Source: Octopus bimaculoides (taxonomy: Eukaryota). From it: DNA of 64,000 bases. This document shows, piece after piece, positions 18,839 through 33,436 of this stretch. The stretch lies in NCBI RefSeq assembly GCF_001194135.2, contig NC_068995.1, positions 40,122,221 through 40,186,220 on the forward strand, given 5' to 3'. The number at the start of each line of letters is the position of its first letter. Position 1 is the first letter of the stretch. A model generated the notes under the pieces. It searched no databases and was not told where the DNA came from. It saw only the letters and a list, made by a program, of their open reading frames with translations. Both the position numbers and the translations under genes were made by a program.

Positions 18839-20902
18839 ATGACGGAAAAAGAATGCAATTGGAAACTATGCGGTTCTGTGTTCTTTATTTTCACACTTGG
18901 TCTAATTGTAGGCTTTGTGACTTTTTCAATTCTGTCAGTGATCGAGTTAAAGCGATTACGTGCTGAAGTGTGTAACGAAGGTCTTGCCAGTTATATAATC
19001 GCTAATCCAGAGAAACCTGTAATATTTGCGGATTTATCACCCAAAGAAATACGTTCAGTATTCGATTACATTAAAAACCAGTCTGATTTAAATATCGTAC
19101 ATCCAGAAAAAGTTAACAGTATTAATGTTAGTTACGTGAATAATATTGAATTAATGTTACCCAAGAAATCTGAAGTTGTTGCTTATTTAGAAGGTAGGGC
19201 TGAACAGCCGCAAAGAAACGCTAAAGTTGTTATCTTTCGTGGAGACAAAAGAAAGCCTGTTGTTGAGGAGTATAATGTCGGCCCACTACCTGAGCCGACA
19301 CAGCATACCTTACAAACAACAATCCCATTTTCTTTTAGACCTGCTAGCGAGACAGAGTGGTTCATTGAAAACGACCGATTTATTCAAAAATTAGAACGAG
19401 ATTTGGGTAGAATAATGAGAGAAAGTTACGGTTCTTCCTTGTTAAACTGTGGAGACCGATGCTTGACATTCTATTTGGCAACACCTGTTTCTTCCGCCAT
19501 TACTAGAACCGAAGAAAGACTGAAGTGGATCATGCTTTCCTATCAGATGGAATATTCTTCTCTGTATCCTTTGGACATGAATATTTTATTGGATTTAACA
19601 GGGAACGATCCGATGGATTTCTCGATAAGGGCAATTTGGTACGAAGGACAACTGTTCAAAACTATCACTGAATTTGTTGACCGTTATCAAAACGATCCAT
19701 CTGTTAAAAAAGTGCGGAGGAAATTTCCGGTTAAGAATGGAAACTTATTTTCTACAGCAAATTTACGAGGCGAAACCTTTCCAACTACAGGTCAACGCCG
19801 TGTTTACCAAACAGAGCCAGACGGTAAAAGGTACCGGGTTGTTGGATCAGAAATTGAATATATGAAATGGAAATTTATCTATAGACTATCCCCAGTTACC
19901 GGGCCTCAATTATTTAATATACGCTATCAGGAAGAACGAATTATCTATGAACTTAGTCTCCAAGAAGTAGCTGTCCATTATTCAGGACAAAATCCAGGAA
20001 CAATGCTTGCTAATTATTATGATAGCTTTGCTATGTACGGCAAAGCAAATAACGGTCTGATACCAGGTGCCGATTGCCCAGAACATTCTTTGATGATCCC
20101 AACTTACTATTTTTCTCAACGAAGTAAAGACATAGTTGAAAAGAACCAATTTTCAATCTGTGTTTTCGAACAAAACACTGGGATTCCTCTGCGACGTCAC
20201 CATTCTTCAACAAAACAATCAGGAAGATTCTATACAGGAATGATGGATGATGTTTTGGTCTTTCGAACAATCACAACTGTGATCAACCGCGATTATATTT
20301 TTGACTTTGTTTTCCACCAGAACGGAGCAGTGGAAGTTCGCAGCATTCCCACAGGTTATATAATGGGGACCTACCCTAAAAACGATGAAAAACGTTACGG
20401 TAGTCACCTCCATAAACACTTACACGGAAATATTCACCAGTATTTATTCAATTACCGAATTGATATAGACATCAAAGGGATCAAAAATCGATTTGAAATG
20501 TTAAATATTGAAGGTGATAAAACTGAGAACCGAAAATGGGGAGGTGAAAAATATTATTATCAAAATAAATTTAGGAGAAAACTTGTTTCTACAGAAAAGG
20601 AGGCTGCGTACAAATTTGACTTTTCTAAACCGAAATATTTAGTCTTTAGCAACGACAAATTTAGAACCGAACAAGGTATTCCTAGATCATATAGAATCCA
20701 AATTAATTCAATGAGCAAAGAATTATTACCCCTTGATCGCAGCACGGAACGAAGTCGATCCTGGAGTCGATACCAATTAGCAGTAACTGTCCATAAAGAC
20801 AATGAGACTCGAAGCAGTTCTGAATATGTAACGTATGATGGCCTGAACCCACTTGTTGACTTTCAGAAATATATGGATGATGACGAGAGCATTGTTGATC
20901 AG
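18839..20902 (+). CDS. Copper amine oxidase (AOC1/AOC3 family) homologue, large coding exon, aa 1-688; type II membrane anchor; cofactor site degenerate
   Basis: Open frame of 688 codons. Acceptor tttttcag ends at 18838 directly before ATG; donor GATCAG|gtaaga at 20903, phase 0. N-terminal hydrophobic segment LCGSVFFIFTLGLIVGFVTFSILSV. Family motifs LSLQEVAVHYSG, YYDS, GADCP, GIPLRRHH, FDFVFHQNGAVEVR, GNIHQ.LFNYRIDIDI, RYQLAVT and ESIVDQ. Confidence 0.93.
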
Positions 20903-21293
20903 GTAAGAATCTTCTTTCGATAGTAGGTAACTTACAAGATAAGCCGAGGTCTAATCAAACCCAAATATATCCACATTTGTTGCTGTTTTACTGAACATTA
21001 CACTGATTACATACAGCATTCTTTATTAAATAAATTTTGATTAATTAAAATTTCAAGGTGGCGAGCTGGTAAAATGCTTGGAGGTATTTCCCTCCCACAA
21101 ATTTGAGGCCTTGTGATTCCAGTAGAAAGGATTATTATTATCATTATTATTATTACTATTATTCAGTAGTTTTATTCTTATAACGTGCTTTCACTTCACT
21201 ACCGAGCGCAGCTCTGTGTGCCTTGGGTATGGAGCCAGTGCATGCCATCAAAGTGACACTGGGTTAAAATATACAAAGCCCAGTATACCCATT

Positions 21294-21462
21294 GTGGAGG
21301 AGCGTGGCTTAGTGGTTAGGGTGTCAGCATCATGATCGTAAGATTGTGGTTTCGATTCCTGGACCGGGCGGCGCGTTGTGTTCTTGAGCAAAACACTTCA
21401 TTTCACGTTGCTCCAGTCCACTCAGGAAACCGGGCCCATGAGCCTGGCTTGGCTTTAAAAGG
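21294..21462 (+). mobile_element. tRNA-derived SINE family E nested in repeat D
   Basis: tgtggaggagcgtggcttagtggttagggtg...ggtttcgattcctggaccgggcg...tgttcttgagcaaaacacttcatttcacg, shared with 34830-35070. Confidence 0.8.
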
Positions 21463-22185
21463 GCACATAAAAAAATAAAGTATACCAACCATGAGTACCC
21501 GTGTGATAAGGGTACACCAGGCACATGCATCACAACCATATGTGCACGACATGGTGTTTTCATATGAAAATAAACATCGCATGAGCTTCCAGGTGGGGCC
21601 CAGTTTCTTCAGGTTGAGTAGCCCATCCTGCTGAAAAGGTCCCTGAATAAGGTTTGTTTAAGTATGTTACCAGAGGTAAATTATCCAAACTCCAAATAAT
21701 TCCTCTCAACACATGGCTATGATGCTGTGCCACTACTTCTGCTCATGATCAGAGATGCAGATATCCTCAGCCTCAAAGTGACATGCTCAAATGGTTATGG
21801 TGAAACAACTGACAAGCAAATCTGTGGTATTGAGCGGAATATTTGTTGTAGCCCATCTTTTATGTATGATTATTATTATTATTGAGTGAGAGAGCAGTGC
21901 ATGCCATCAAAGTGACACTGGGGTAAAATATACGAAGCCCATTATACCCATCATGACTACCCGTCTGATAAGGGTACACCAGGCACATGCATCACAACCA
22001 TATGTACGCGACATGATGATCTCATATCAAGATAAACAGCGCATGATCTCGCAGGTGAGGCCCAGTTAGAATTTTCTCCAGGTCGAGTAGTCCATCCCGC
22101 TCAAAAGGTCCCTTATTATTATTATTATTATTATTATTATTATTATTATTATTATTATTATTATTATTATTATTATTATTATTTT

Positions 22186-31565: not shown

Positions 31566-31875
31566 AGGCGCAGGTGCAGCTGTGTGGTAAGAAGCTTGTT
31601 TCCCAACCGCATGGTTGCAGGTTCACTCCCACCGCGTGACATCTTTGGCAAGCGTCTTCTTCTATAGCCCCGGGTCGACTAAAGCCTTGTGAGTGGATTT
31701 GGTAGACGGAAACTGAAAGAATTCCGTCGTATATATTTATGTATATATCTATTTGTGTGTATCTTTGTGTCTGTGGTTTATCTCTCCATGACCGCTTGAC
31801 AACCGGTGATGTTGTGTTTACGTTCCCGTAATTTAGCGGTTCGGTAAAAATAACCGATAGAATAAATACTAAATA
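31566..31875 (+). mobile_element. SINE family B
   Basis: Head, core ggatttggtagacggaaactgaaag, microsatellite and cgcttgacaaccg. Confidence 0.8.
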
Positions 31876-33148
31876 CATACATACATACATACATACATGA
31901 GATCTCCGTTGATAGGCCCCTAATATTAAATATATTAACACTTGCGGTATATAAATTAGTAGCTCTATTTTCCTGCAGCTACTGGAGTGGTTAGTATATA
32001 TACAAATTAGATGCTTATTTTCTAGGCCCGCTCAAAGTGAAGTGGACGCCTCTGGTGAGAATCCAATAAGGTTCAGAGGTTGATGAGGTTGATTAAGGAC
32101 ATTCATCATTTTAGGATCTTTTCTATTGATTGCCACTTTTCAATTTCTTCAATTTTGGTTCCAATTGATTTCATATGTGGTGTATTGGTGTAGTTTTGTT
32201 AAGTAATCATTGTCATAAAATTCATTTTCACCGTAAATCAATAAATAAAAAGTTAATAGACTTTAAAGTTTGAAAATTTGGGGGTAATCTTAGCCAATCA
32301 AAAACCACAGACATATAGGTGCCTGTTTCCGTAGCAACAAGCCAAGCTGTTACCAAACTGCTTACCACGCGTTCTTTTTGTCACTTATTAAATGCTTAAA
32401 ACACACGCGGTATTAGGTGATCATGAGATGAGATAAAAATAACAGTTAAATAGGCCTTAATTCATGCATGAAAAATGTTGTTGTTTCGTTATTGCATAAT
32501 TGTATAACTTCCCGTGTATAGAATACATATTCGCAAAAATTTTATGAAAATTCCAAAAAATAAAAGTTATGCGATGTCATATGGCATGCGTAAAGCAGAA
32601 TCCCGTTAATATTTCATTTGCTTGCAGTTGACAACACGCTGTCACGCACAAAATGACATCTTCCAAATTATCAAACTTTAAAACCCTTTAACTTTAAAAA
32701 AATTTTTCTGGAAAATGTAAATTATCTCCTGAGATTCAGCGTGGAAAATTACATCAATACATCAAATTTTAAACTTTTCACTAAACTTTAAAATTTCCAC
32801 AGGTGCAGCTAAACAGAAAATCTCCTCAATGTTTTTTGTTTGTTTGTTTTTATTTTATTTTTTTTTGCTTTTTTTTTTAATATACTCTACTGAGAAATAG
32901 ATAAATTAGTCCTTTTTACGTATCTATAATATAGGTTATACATATCCATATATATATANNNNNNNNNNGTGTTTGTGCGTGTTTGTATATATGTGTGTGT
33001 GTGTGTGTGTGTGTGTGTGTGTGTGTATATGTATATCCATCGTTAGTTTCTTGCATACATTATATAAACCGTTTCCTTCATTCTAGATTCGGTCTTTTAG
33101 TAGATTCGTCTATGTCTATATCTCTTGTTTTTTTTAAATCTTTTGTAG

Positions 33149-33436
33149 GATTTGGTTGTTTGGGTTACCCTTGGATCTTACCGAATTCCACATATGGAGG
33201 ATTTACCGGTGATACCGACAGTCGGAGAACATCACAGCTTCTTTCTGCTACCGTTTAATTATTTCAATGAAGATCCATCAGTAGGTTCCAGAAACGCGAT
33301 TCGTATGGAAAGGCTCAATAACGGGAAATTAAAAATCGAACGTTATGGAGTATCAAACAAACAACAATGTGTTCCTAAATCATCTAAATTCGATGACACT
33401 GTAACTAGAAACCCTAATTTGATGTTTGGTGCGTAA
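33149..33436 (+). CDS. Copper amine oxidase homologue, terminal coding exon, aa 689-783 plus stop
   Basis: Acceptor tttttttaaatcttttgtag ends at 33148. Phase-0 translation DLVVWVTLGSYRIPHMEDLPVIPTVGEHHSFFLLPFNYFNEDPS matches the family C-terminal block DLVAWVT.GF.HIPHAEDIPNT...FFLRPYNFF.EDPS. TAA at 33434-33436. Confidence 0.9.
   Translation, partial: DLVVWVTLGSYRIPHMEDLPVIPTVGEHHSFFLLPFNYFNEDPSVGSRNAIRMERLNNGKLKIERYGVSNKQQCVPKSSKFDDTVTRNPNLMFGA

Follow-up and report, generated by a model that had tools for sequence, protein, structure and literature searches.

What does a copper amine oxidase (CAO) become when the residues that build its cofactor are gone and the gene stays intact? The question is raised by a locus of Octopus bimaculoides in a stretch of 64,000 nucleotides, here called the window (NCBI RefSeq assembly GCF_001194135.2, contig NC_068995.1, positions 40,122,221 to 40,186,220 of the forward strand; all positions below are those of the window). 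A two-exon gene at 18839-33436 on the plus strand encodes a CAO homologue of 783 aa. An earlier note on this DNA had proposed that the protein maintains the CAO fold, has lost oxidase chemistry and has been repurposed, and the orthologues, the dN/dS ratios (omega) and a confident AlphaFold model described below support that proposal. The gene very probably encodes a pseudoenzyme, that is, an intact CAO homologue kept by selection.

The gene model can be read directly from the window. Exon 1 (18839-20902), as delimited by its open reading frame (ORF), donor site and Pfam matches, starts with ATG and holds codons 1-688, which encode the N-terminal anchor, domains N2 and N3 and the greater part of the catalytic domain. 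Exon 2 (33149-33436) holds codons 689-783 (95 codons), which complete the catalytic domain at its C-terminus, followed by the TAA stop codon at 33434-33436. They are separated by a single phase 0 intron (20903-33148), 12.2 kb long as assembled, with the donor GTAAGA at 20903 and an acceptor (...TCTTTTGTAG, a pyrimidine-rich tract followed by AG) that ends at 33148. The ORF at 18839-20923 (+) is the sole long one of the window. The Pfam domain Cu_amine_oxid (PF01179) matches exon 1 over profile positions 3-364 (E=5e-85, 286 bits against a cutoff of 27) and exon 2 over positions 366-407 (E=1.7e-9, 37.5 bits), so that nothing is lost at the exon junction and the profile runs through it seamlessly. 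Upstream of the catalytic domain, the N2 and N3 domains are matched by PF02727 (42.5 bits) and PF02728 (22.7 bits against a cutoff of 22.6). The spliced product has neither stops nor frameshifts and is identical to RefSeq XP_052829248.1 (P0121) from a later, chromosome-level O. bimaculoides assembly. The intact two-exon gene with canonical splice sites that the earlier note had described is thus borne out by ORF, Pfam and RefSeq identity. A tblastn search of the window with the 783-aa protein found no second CAO copy.

The window contains 19 assembly gaps, three of which fall in the span of the CAO gene (22215-22294, 30359-30986, and 32959-32968); all three are intronic, as are repeat insertions, and no coding base touches a gap. 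BLASTN of window positions 8-46 kb against the homologous Octopus sinensis locus (L002) gave a collinear chain from upstream of exon 1 to past exon 2, bridging the second and third gaps. Opposite the second gap (628 N), O. sinensis has only some 215 bp, and the assembled length of this gap is probably overestimated; the third corresponds to about 0 bp. The first lies inside a 3.6-kb block (21069-24666) that is rich in repeats and microsatellites and has no O. sinensis counterpart. The homologous introns, which contain no N, measure 6974 bp (7.0 kb) in O. sinensis and 5167 bp (5.2 kb) in Argonauta (L001). Because the gaps are intronic, the locus is collinear with the gap-free O. sinensis locus and the same protein is present in RefSeq, the two-exon gene model is sound.

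CAO activity (EC 1.4.3.21/22) requires the topaquinone cofactor (TPQ), which is derived from the Tyr of a T-x-x-N-Y-D/E motif, and formation of TPQ requires copper bound by three strictly conserved His (PMC3382800). We assigned equivalent residues from a HMMER alignment to human diamine oxidase (hDAO; structure 3hi7, chain index +20 = hDAO number) and took the conservation context from an alignment of the 121 best homologue sequences. In the octopus protein the TPQ motif reads T-V-I-N-R-D-Y, with Arg484 (CGC, 20288-20290, +) in place of the precursor Tyr (hDAO TPQ461). The H-x-H pair of copper ligands reads H-Q-Y (residues 533-535, 20435-20443, +), where His533 corresponds to the retained hDAO His510 and Tyr535 (TAT, 20441-20443, +) replaces His512. 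The third ligand, the His of T-x-G-x-x-H-I-P (hDAO His675), is replaced by Arg700 (CGA, 33182-33184, +), leaving one of the three copper His. The corresponding columns of the homologue alignment hold the TPQ Tyr in 112 of the 121 sequences, His in 115 (His510) and 116 (His512), and His in 93 of the 101 ungapped sequences at His675. The earlier count of three replaced residues among the four needed to form the cofactor therefore stands in both alignments. Since there is no TPQ precursor Tyr and two copper His are replaced, established CAO biochemistry suggests that the octopus protein carries neither quinone nor copper and would be unable to oxidise amines.

Other parts of the active site are kept. 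Asp395 (20021-20023, +) is the equivalent of the hDAO catalytic base Asp373 and is present in all octopods; Tyr381 (19979-19981, +) corresponds to hDAO Tyr359, the conserved Tyr that hydrogen-bonds to O4 of TPQ (PMC3382800); and Tyr393 corresponds to the gate residue Tyr371, which stacks on ligands bound in the active-site channel. The 14-residue spacing of Tyr381 and Asp395, which the earlier note had matched to AOC3 numbering, is recovered through these hDAO equivalents, and the motifs DCP, LRRHH, and EDPS that it had listed lie at residues 412, 451, and 729. The N-x-D-Y residues flanking position 484, the disulfide Cys and a D-x-D segment are retained as well. Cys45, 204, 208, 413, 441, and 762 and the sequons N96 and N655 are kept across cephalopods, and the arm segment PLRRHH is invariant among the octopods examined.

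The closest enzyme of known structure is hDAO itself (AOC1; 3hi7, 3mph), which is both the best sequence match in the PDB (E=1e-130, residues 57-769) and the best structural match. The AlphaFold model of the octopus protein has a mean pLDDT of 92.7 and a pTM of 0.90, which fits the maintained fold that the earlier note had proposed, and Foldseek places hDAO first (TM 0.84-0.93, rmsd 2.4 Å, E=2e-71) and VAP-1 next. By its predicted structure the CAO fold is kept, and sequence together with predicted fold make the octopus protein a member of the homologous CAO family (PF01179, PF02727, and PF02728). The two proteins are 33-34% identical and share the order of N2, N3 and catalytic domains, the base Asp, N-x-D-Y, conserved Cys and D-x-D, whereas hDAO has TPQ461 and His510, His512, and His675 where the octopus protein has Arg484, His533, Tyr535, and Arg700. 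They also differ at the N-terminus, where the octopus protein has a long hydrophobic anchor and hDAO, a secreted protein, a signal peptide. The anchor reported earlier corresponds to a single hydrophobic segment (codons 12-35, 18872-18943, +) with a Kyte-Doolittle maximum of 2.55 at residues 14-32, which sit in an AlphaFold helix spanning residues 8-42; it is probably an uncleaved signal-anchor, a topology predicted from these features. At the hDAO channel residues Asp186, Trp376, and Ser380 (PMC7144023), the alignment to 3hi7 places Leu212, Ala398, and Lys402 in the octopus protein.

Orthologues of the window gene, which we call lineage A, indicate when the cofactor site was lost. An incomplete site is found in five octopod genomes, comprising three Octopus species, an octopodid contig (L008) and Argonauta. 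The TPQ, H-x-H and third-His motifs are N-R-D-Y, H-Q-Y, and Y-R both in O. sinensis, whose protein is 96% identical, and in the full-length protein of Octopus vulgaris. The octopodid contig L008 (91% nucleotide identity, exon 1 only) has N-Q-D-Y (CAA) and H-Q-Y, with exon 2 outside the contig; this Logan contig includes the 5' flank and the start of the intron, is therefore genomic or unspliced, and adds a species without bearing on expression. Argonauta hians (79% identical) has N-Q-D-Y (CAA), Y-Q-H, and S-Y-R. The frame is unbroken and both splice sites are preserved in O. bimaculoides, O. sinensis, and Argonauta, and exon 1 is unbroken in L008. The decapodiform orthologues, P0004 (a cluster including the Sepia pharaonis 'AOC1' CAE1290654) and the decapod-like P0003 (81% identical to P0004), resemble the octopus protein in length, N-terminal anchor and conserved Cys, are 57-60% identical to it, and form its sister clade in neighbour-joining (NJ) trees. 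Unlike the octopus protein, both keep N-Y-D-Y, H-Q-H, and V-H-H and are predicted to be active. Chitons are canonical in all three motifs.

The idea that cephalopods share the Arg, Tyr and Arg substitutions of O. bimaculoides therefore holds in part. Arg700, together with Tyr699, is the only substitution common to all octopods, L008 being read over exon 1 only. Position 484 varies, with Gln in Argonauta and L008 and Arg in the three Octopus species; the H-x-H loss differs too, affecting the first His in Argonauta and the second in Octopus and L008; and decapods are canonical throughout. Parsimony assigns H700R, H699Y and the disappearance of the TPQ Tyr to the octopod stem, in the interval between the divergence from squids and cuttlefish and that of Octopus and Argonauta. 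Gln484 is probably ancestral in octopods and Arg484 derived in Octopus sensu stricto. The different H-x-H His were lost independently, each through a single C-to-T change. These lineage-varying changes look like the erosion of a site already without copper and not like the assembly of a new catalytic set.

Loss of the cofactor site has been accompanied by continued constraint on the protein. Between O. bimaculoides and O. sinensis, omega is 0.19-0.23, with 34 nonsynonymous and 47 synonymous differences (p=7e-13 for omega<1); for exon 1 of O. bimaculoides and L008 it is 0.12-0.14, with an unsaturated dS of 0.22-0.27. Within Octopodidae the ratio thus spans 0.12-0.23, as far below 1 as the earlier note had supposed for a maintained protein. 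Because dS is saturated to Argonauta and to decapods (the NG86 estimate is undefined for octopod-decapod pairs), the deep pairs are given as pN/pS and maximum-likelihood values and are rough: pN is 0.113 and pS 0.715 between O. bimaculoides and Argonauta, compared with 0.115 and 0.638 in a control pair of predicted-active decapod orthologues. On these estimates, purifying selection on the octopod protein is as strong as on the decapod orthologues. With 108 canonical relatives as the reference, 115 alignment columns are conserved at 90% or more, and the octopus protein deviates in only 6 of them (322, 418, 484, 535, 540, and 700); three of these are the cofactor sites 484, 535, and 700, and 418 and 540 have changed in decapods too. 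The protein is thus homologous to active enzymes, lacks essential cofactor residues and is under purifying selection across species, as expected of a pseudoenzyme. Of the marks of a processed or decaying pseudogene (a frameshift or stop, intron loss, an omega close to 1) the gene shows none: its frame is unbroken, its GT-AG intron remains and omega is well below 1.

Octopods possess a second CAO, which we call lineage B. Our first homologue search missed it, and a provisional conclusion that octopods have a single CAO gene, and hence no oxidase, was withdrawn when a search with the active decapod orthologue as query recovered the canonical paralogue P0200. Its 90% cluster includes O. vulgaris, O. 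sinensis, O. bimaculoides (XP_052834318, P0210), and Argonauta (P0208), and a sister cluster includes a second S. pharaonis 'AOC1' (Sepia lineage B: P0080 and P0212). With N-Y-D-Y, H-A-H, Y-H-I-P and the base Asp all in place, lineage B is canonical at every catalytic site. It is found in the same genomes as lineage A and resembles it in family, N-terminal hydrophobic anchor and intron position (IVDx/DLV), with 37-39% identity to the window protein. The active paralogues postulated by the earlier note accordingly exist, as judged from their catalytic motifs, but the O. bimaculoides copy lies on another (192-Mb) chromosome, outside the window. Lineage B evolves much more slowly than lineage A, with identities of 93% against 79% between Octopus and Argonauta and 77% against 57% between Octopus and Sepia. 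In the NJ tree it forms a long separate branch outside the main mollusc group, whereas lineage A falls among mainstream mollusc CAOs next to chitons. Sequence comparison thus indicates that one of two old cephalopod CAO paralogues went dead in one cephalopod superorder. Since octopods have the canonical lineage B, oxidase activity would not be lost from the animal as a whole, and lineage B is its predicted supplier.

Among vertebrate CAOs, VAP-1/AOC3 offers a functional precedent. It is a membrane-anchored ecto-CAO, as is predicted for the octopus protein, has a documented adhesive function and ranks second among the structural matches (TM about 0.8-0.9). It binds Siglec-9 and Siglec-10 (as peptides) in its enzymatic groove, and its Y471F mutant, although inactive, shows normal expression and folding (PMC6306676). 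Whereas the octopus protein is predicted to be inactive, VAP-1, to which it is about 30% identical, is catalytically active, and much of its biology needs the oxidase activity (PMC6306676). The likeness does not reflect orthology to vertebrate AOC2-4, as the octopus protein groups with mollusc CAOs next to chitons and its best human match is AOC1, not AOC3; in a published CAO tree, mollusc CAOs likewise form one clade apart from vertebrate AOC2-4 (PMC12058724).

These observations are consistent with the following course of events. On the octopod stem, lineage A would have lost the copper site and the TPQ precursor, and since then it would have been maintained as an intact and folded protein, probably a dimer, that is anchored in the membrane at its N-terminus. 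Its action would be non-catalytic, at the cell surface or in the secretory pathway, where the CAO scaffold, with some or all of its active-site channel, would bind an amine-bearing ligand or a protein partner without turnover; Arg700 may fill the former copper site. We infer that scaffold and channel are still used because the base Asp, N-x-D-Y, the gate Tyr, the arms and the disulfides are retained. Such binding would resemble the adhesive half of VAP-1/AOC3 function. Taken together, a loss on the octopod stem, a pseudoenzyme under selection and a non-catalytic role on the CAO scaffold make a reading that we consider likely, while the specific mechanism of a non-catalytic surface binder is held tentatively, at somewhat less than even confidence. 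An RGD at residues 133-135 was considered as a specific adhesion motif and rejected, since R-G-D is the mollusc CAO consensus at this place, active members included.

Several points weigh against a selected, non-catalytic binder, in addition to the saturation of the deep comparisons given above. Over the 31 positions compared in the loop with Tyr381 and Asp395, Octopus and Argonauta differ at 8 and two decapods at 1, which speaks for a somewhat relaxed pocket and against its strict preservation. Inactivity is predicted by comparing sequences, and membrane topology, dimerisation and the idea of an Arg in place of copper are likewise inferred. The protein collection yielded no spliced transcript contig and no protein-level evidence, and the sole members of the protein cluster outside genome annotations are contigs that are unspliced or genomic. 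A C-terminal query of 324 aa that spans the exon junction and the changed sites returned no Octopus match and 11 short proteins of unrelated species, a result that is uninformative either way. RefSeq models exist for the octopus gene.

The best surviving alternative, which we regard as unlikely, is that the octopus protein serves as a non-catalytic heterodimer subunit that modulates the activity, localisation or stability of lineage B. CAOs are obligate dimers held together by arms of the catalytic domain, and the invariance of PLRRHH in the octopods examined would fit the preservation of such an interface. The presence of lineage B in every octopod genome examined, and the likeness of the two lineages in N-terminal hydrophobic anchor and exon structure, would also suit a partnership. 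However, with 37-39% identity and long separate branches in the NJ tree, A and B have had a long time for their interfaces to diverge, and both decapod copies look active, so that nothing points to an A-B partnership in the ancestor.

Less probable still is that the protein remains an enzyme and catalyses another, TPQ-independent reaction through Asp395, His533, Tyr381, Tyr535, and the Arg residues. The catalytic domain is under strong purifying selection and retains the catalytic base, N-x-D-Y and the gate Tyr, which is compatible with this, as is the occurrence of an H-to-Y change within H-x-H in both octopod branches. That change is a single C-to-T transition, though, and is expected from mutation bias. 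The changed residues are moreover specific to lineages (Arg or Gln at 484; H-Q-Y or Y-Q-H), as in erosion after loss, the loop that carries the base is relaxed in octopods, and an enzyme with the CAO fold that works without TPQ is not known (PMC3382800).

That the gene is an unexpressed or decaying pseudogene that happens to be free of stop codons is effectively refuted by the selection tests. The protein-collection searches gave no transcript evidence, and the octopod stem carries about twice as many departures from the states common to decapods and outgroups as the decapod stem (31 versus 14, binomial p=0.016). Against this stand the rejection of neutrality within Octopodidae, the 109 of 115 conserved columns that are kept, the intact frame and splice sites in O. 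bimaculoides, O. sinensis, and Argonauta, the intact exon 1 of L008 and the full-length protein of O. vulgaris. An assembly or sequencing artefact of a gap-rich draft, as the 19 gaps of the window with three in the gene span might suggest, is refuted by the intronic position of these gaps, the identical RefSeq protein from the later assembly, the collinear gap-free O. sinensis locus and like substitutions in independent genomes of other species.

The pseudoenzyme reading of the octopod gene has parallels in other molluscs. Scallop paralogues (P0057, P0062, and P0115) carry N-Q-D-C and S-Q-H and have Tyr in place of the base Asp, ark-shell paralogues (P0059 and P0061, from Tegillarca and a relative) carry Q-H-D-F and F-Q-Q, and the motifs N-S-D-Y and N-D-D-Y occur among the planorbid paralogues (P0063 from Bulinus, P0069 from Biomphalaria). 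All are full-length, are without the TPQ Tyr, copper His or both, are annotated as amine oxidases and fall in clades apart from cephalopods in the NJ tree. The base Asp, retained in the octopod protein, is missing from them as well. Because these presumed dead paralogues fall in separate clades, cofactor loss in mollusc CAOs is, as predicted from their motifs, recurrent and independent. Plant CuAO clades without the T/S-x-x-N-Y-D motif have also been described (PMC12058724).

Other features of the window include a follistatin-like gene on the minus strand (44904-54976). Its FST_N exon spans 54740-54976 (Pfam E=1.9e-18), and three more exons, which encode Kazal/FS domains, lie at 52041-52436, 46981-47370, and 44904-45248. 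A follistatin-like neighbour lies downstream of the CAO gene in the same orientation in O. sinensis (L002) and Argonauta (L001) also, and local synteny is thus conserved across octopods. Two short ORFs on the plus strand, one directly upstream of the CAO start codon (17906-18163) and one at 50503-50946, contain the motif HRPYSPDSAASDYHLFPDMKRHLAG, from which we take them to be mariner/Tc1 transposase remnants; a Pfam search of both gave no match at E<=0.01. In XP_014786636.1 (850 aa), a RefSeq model of earlier date, the first of these ORFs is fused to the N-terminus of the CAO. An interspersed repeat of about 200-380 bp occurs in both orientations (2953-3168, 13421-13636, 18267-18518, 27427-27768, 41693-41881, 54139-54372, 58562-58720, and 59304-59474), and every copy translates to the peptide VFIERKHLKLHEAPAGDGGEPCCTLSPQLSLTLTSCFCCACNSKGQPCH. 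One copy lies close to the CAO gene on its 5' side and another within the intron, several are present in the O. sinensis locus, and the repeat is probably an element resembling short interspersed nuclear elements.

Full-text literature searches for a CAO pseudoenzyme, for octopus or cephalopod CAOs and for the protein accessions returned no relevant paper, and no description of a dead member in animals was found in this way for a family of textbook self-processing quinoenzymes. That the octopod protein represents a previously undescribed pseudoenzyme lineage is well supported by the comparisons of orthologues. The earlier suggestion of an undescribed system was overstated, as this is one already annotated gene, named as an enzyme, that appears to be a dead copy of a well-known family and is not a multi-part system. 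The name 'putative amine oxidase [copper-containing]' probably misstates its activity, as do the names of several bivalve and snail paralogues.

A broader proposal, which we put forward as speculative and somewhat doubtful, is that the CAO scaffold was converted several times in molluscs (in octopods, pteriomorph bivalves, and planorbid snails) to a cofactor-free binding protein, and that the octopod orthologue, with Arg in the copper site, would be a surface receptor or adhesion molecule for amine-bearing ligands. If this is true, the octopod protein would be a natural and long-lasting counterpart of the 'adhesion-only' VAP-1 mutant. The predicted-active cuttlefish orthologue, the dead octopus orthologue and the predicted-active octopus paralogue together provide a set for comparison. 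As a cofactor-less and yet constrained protein, the octopod orthologue would constitute a natural experiment that isolates the non-catalytic role of CAOs, a role that has long been debated for VAP-1/AOC3.

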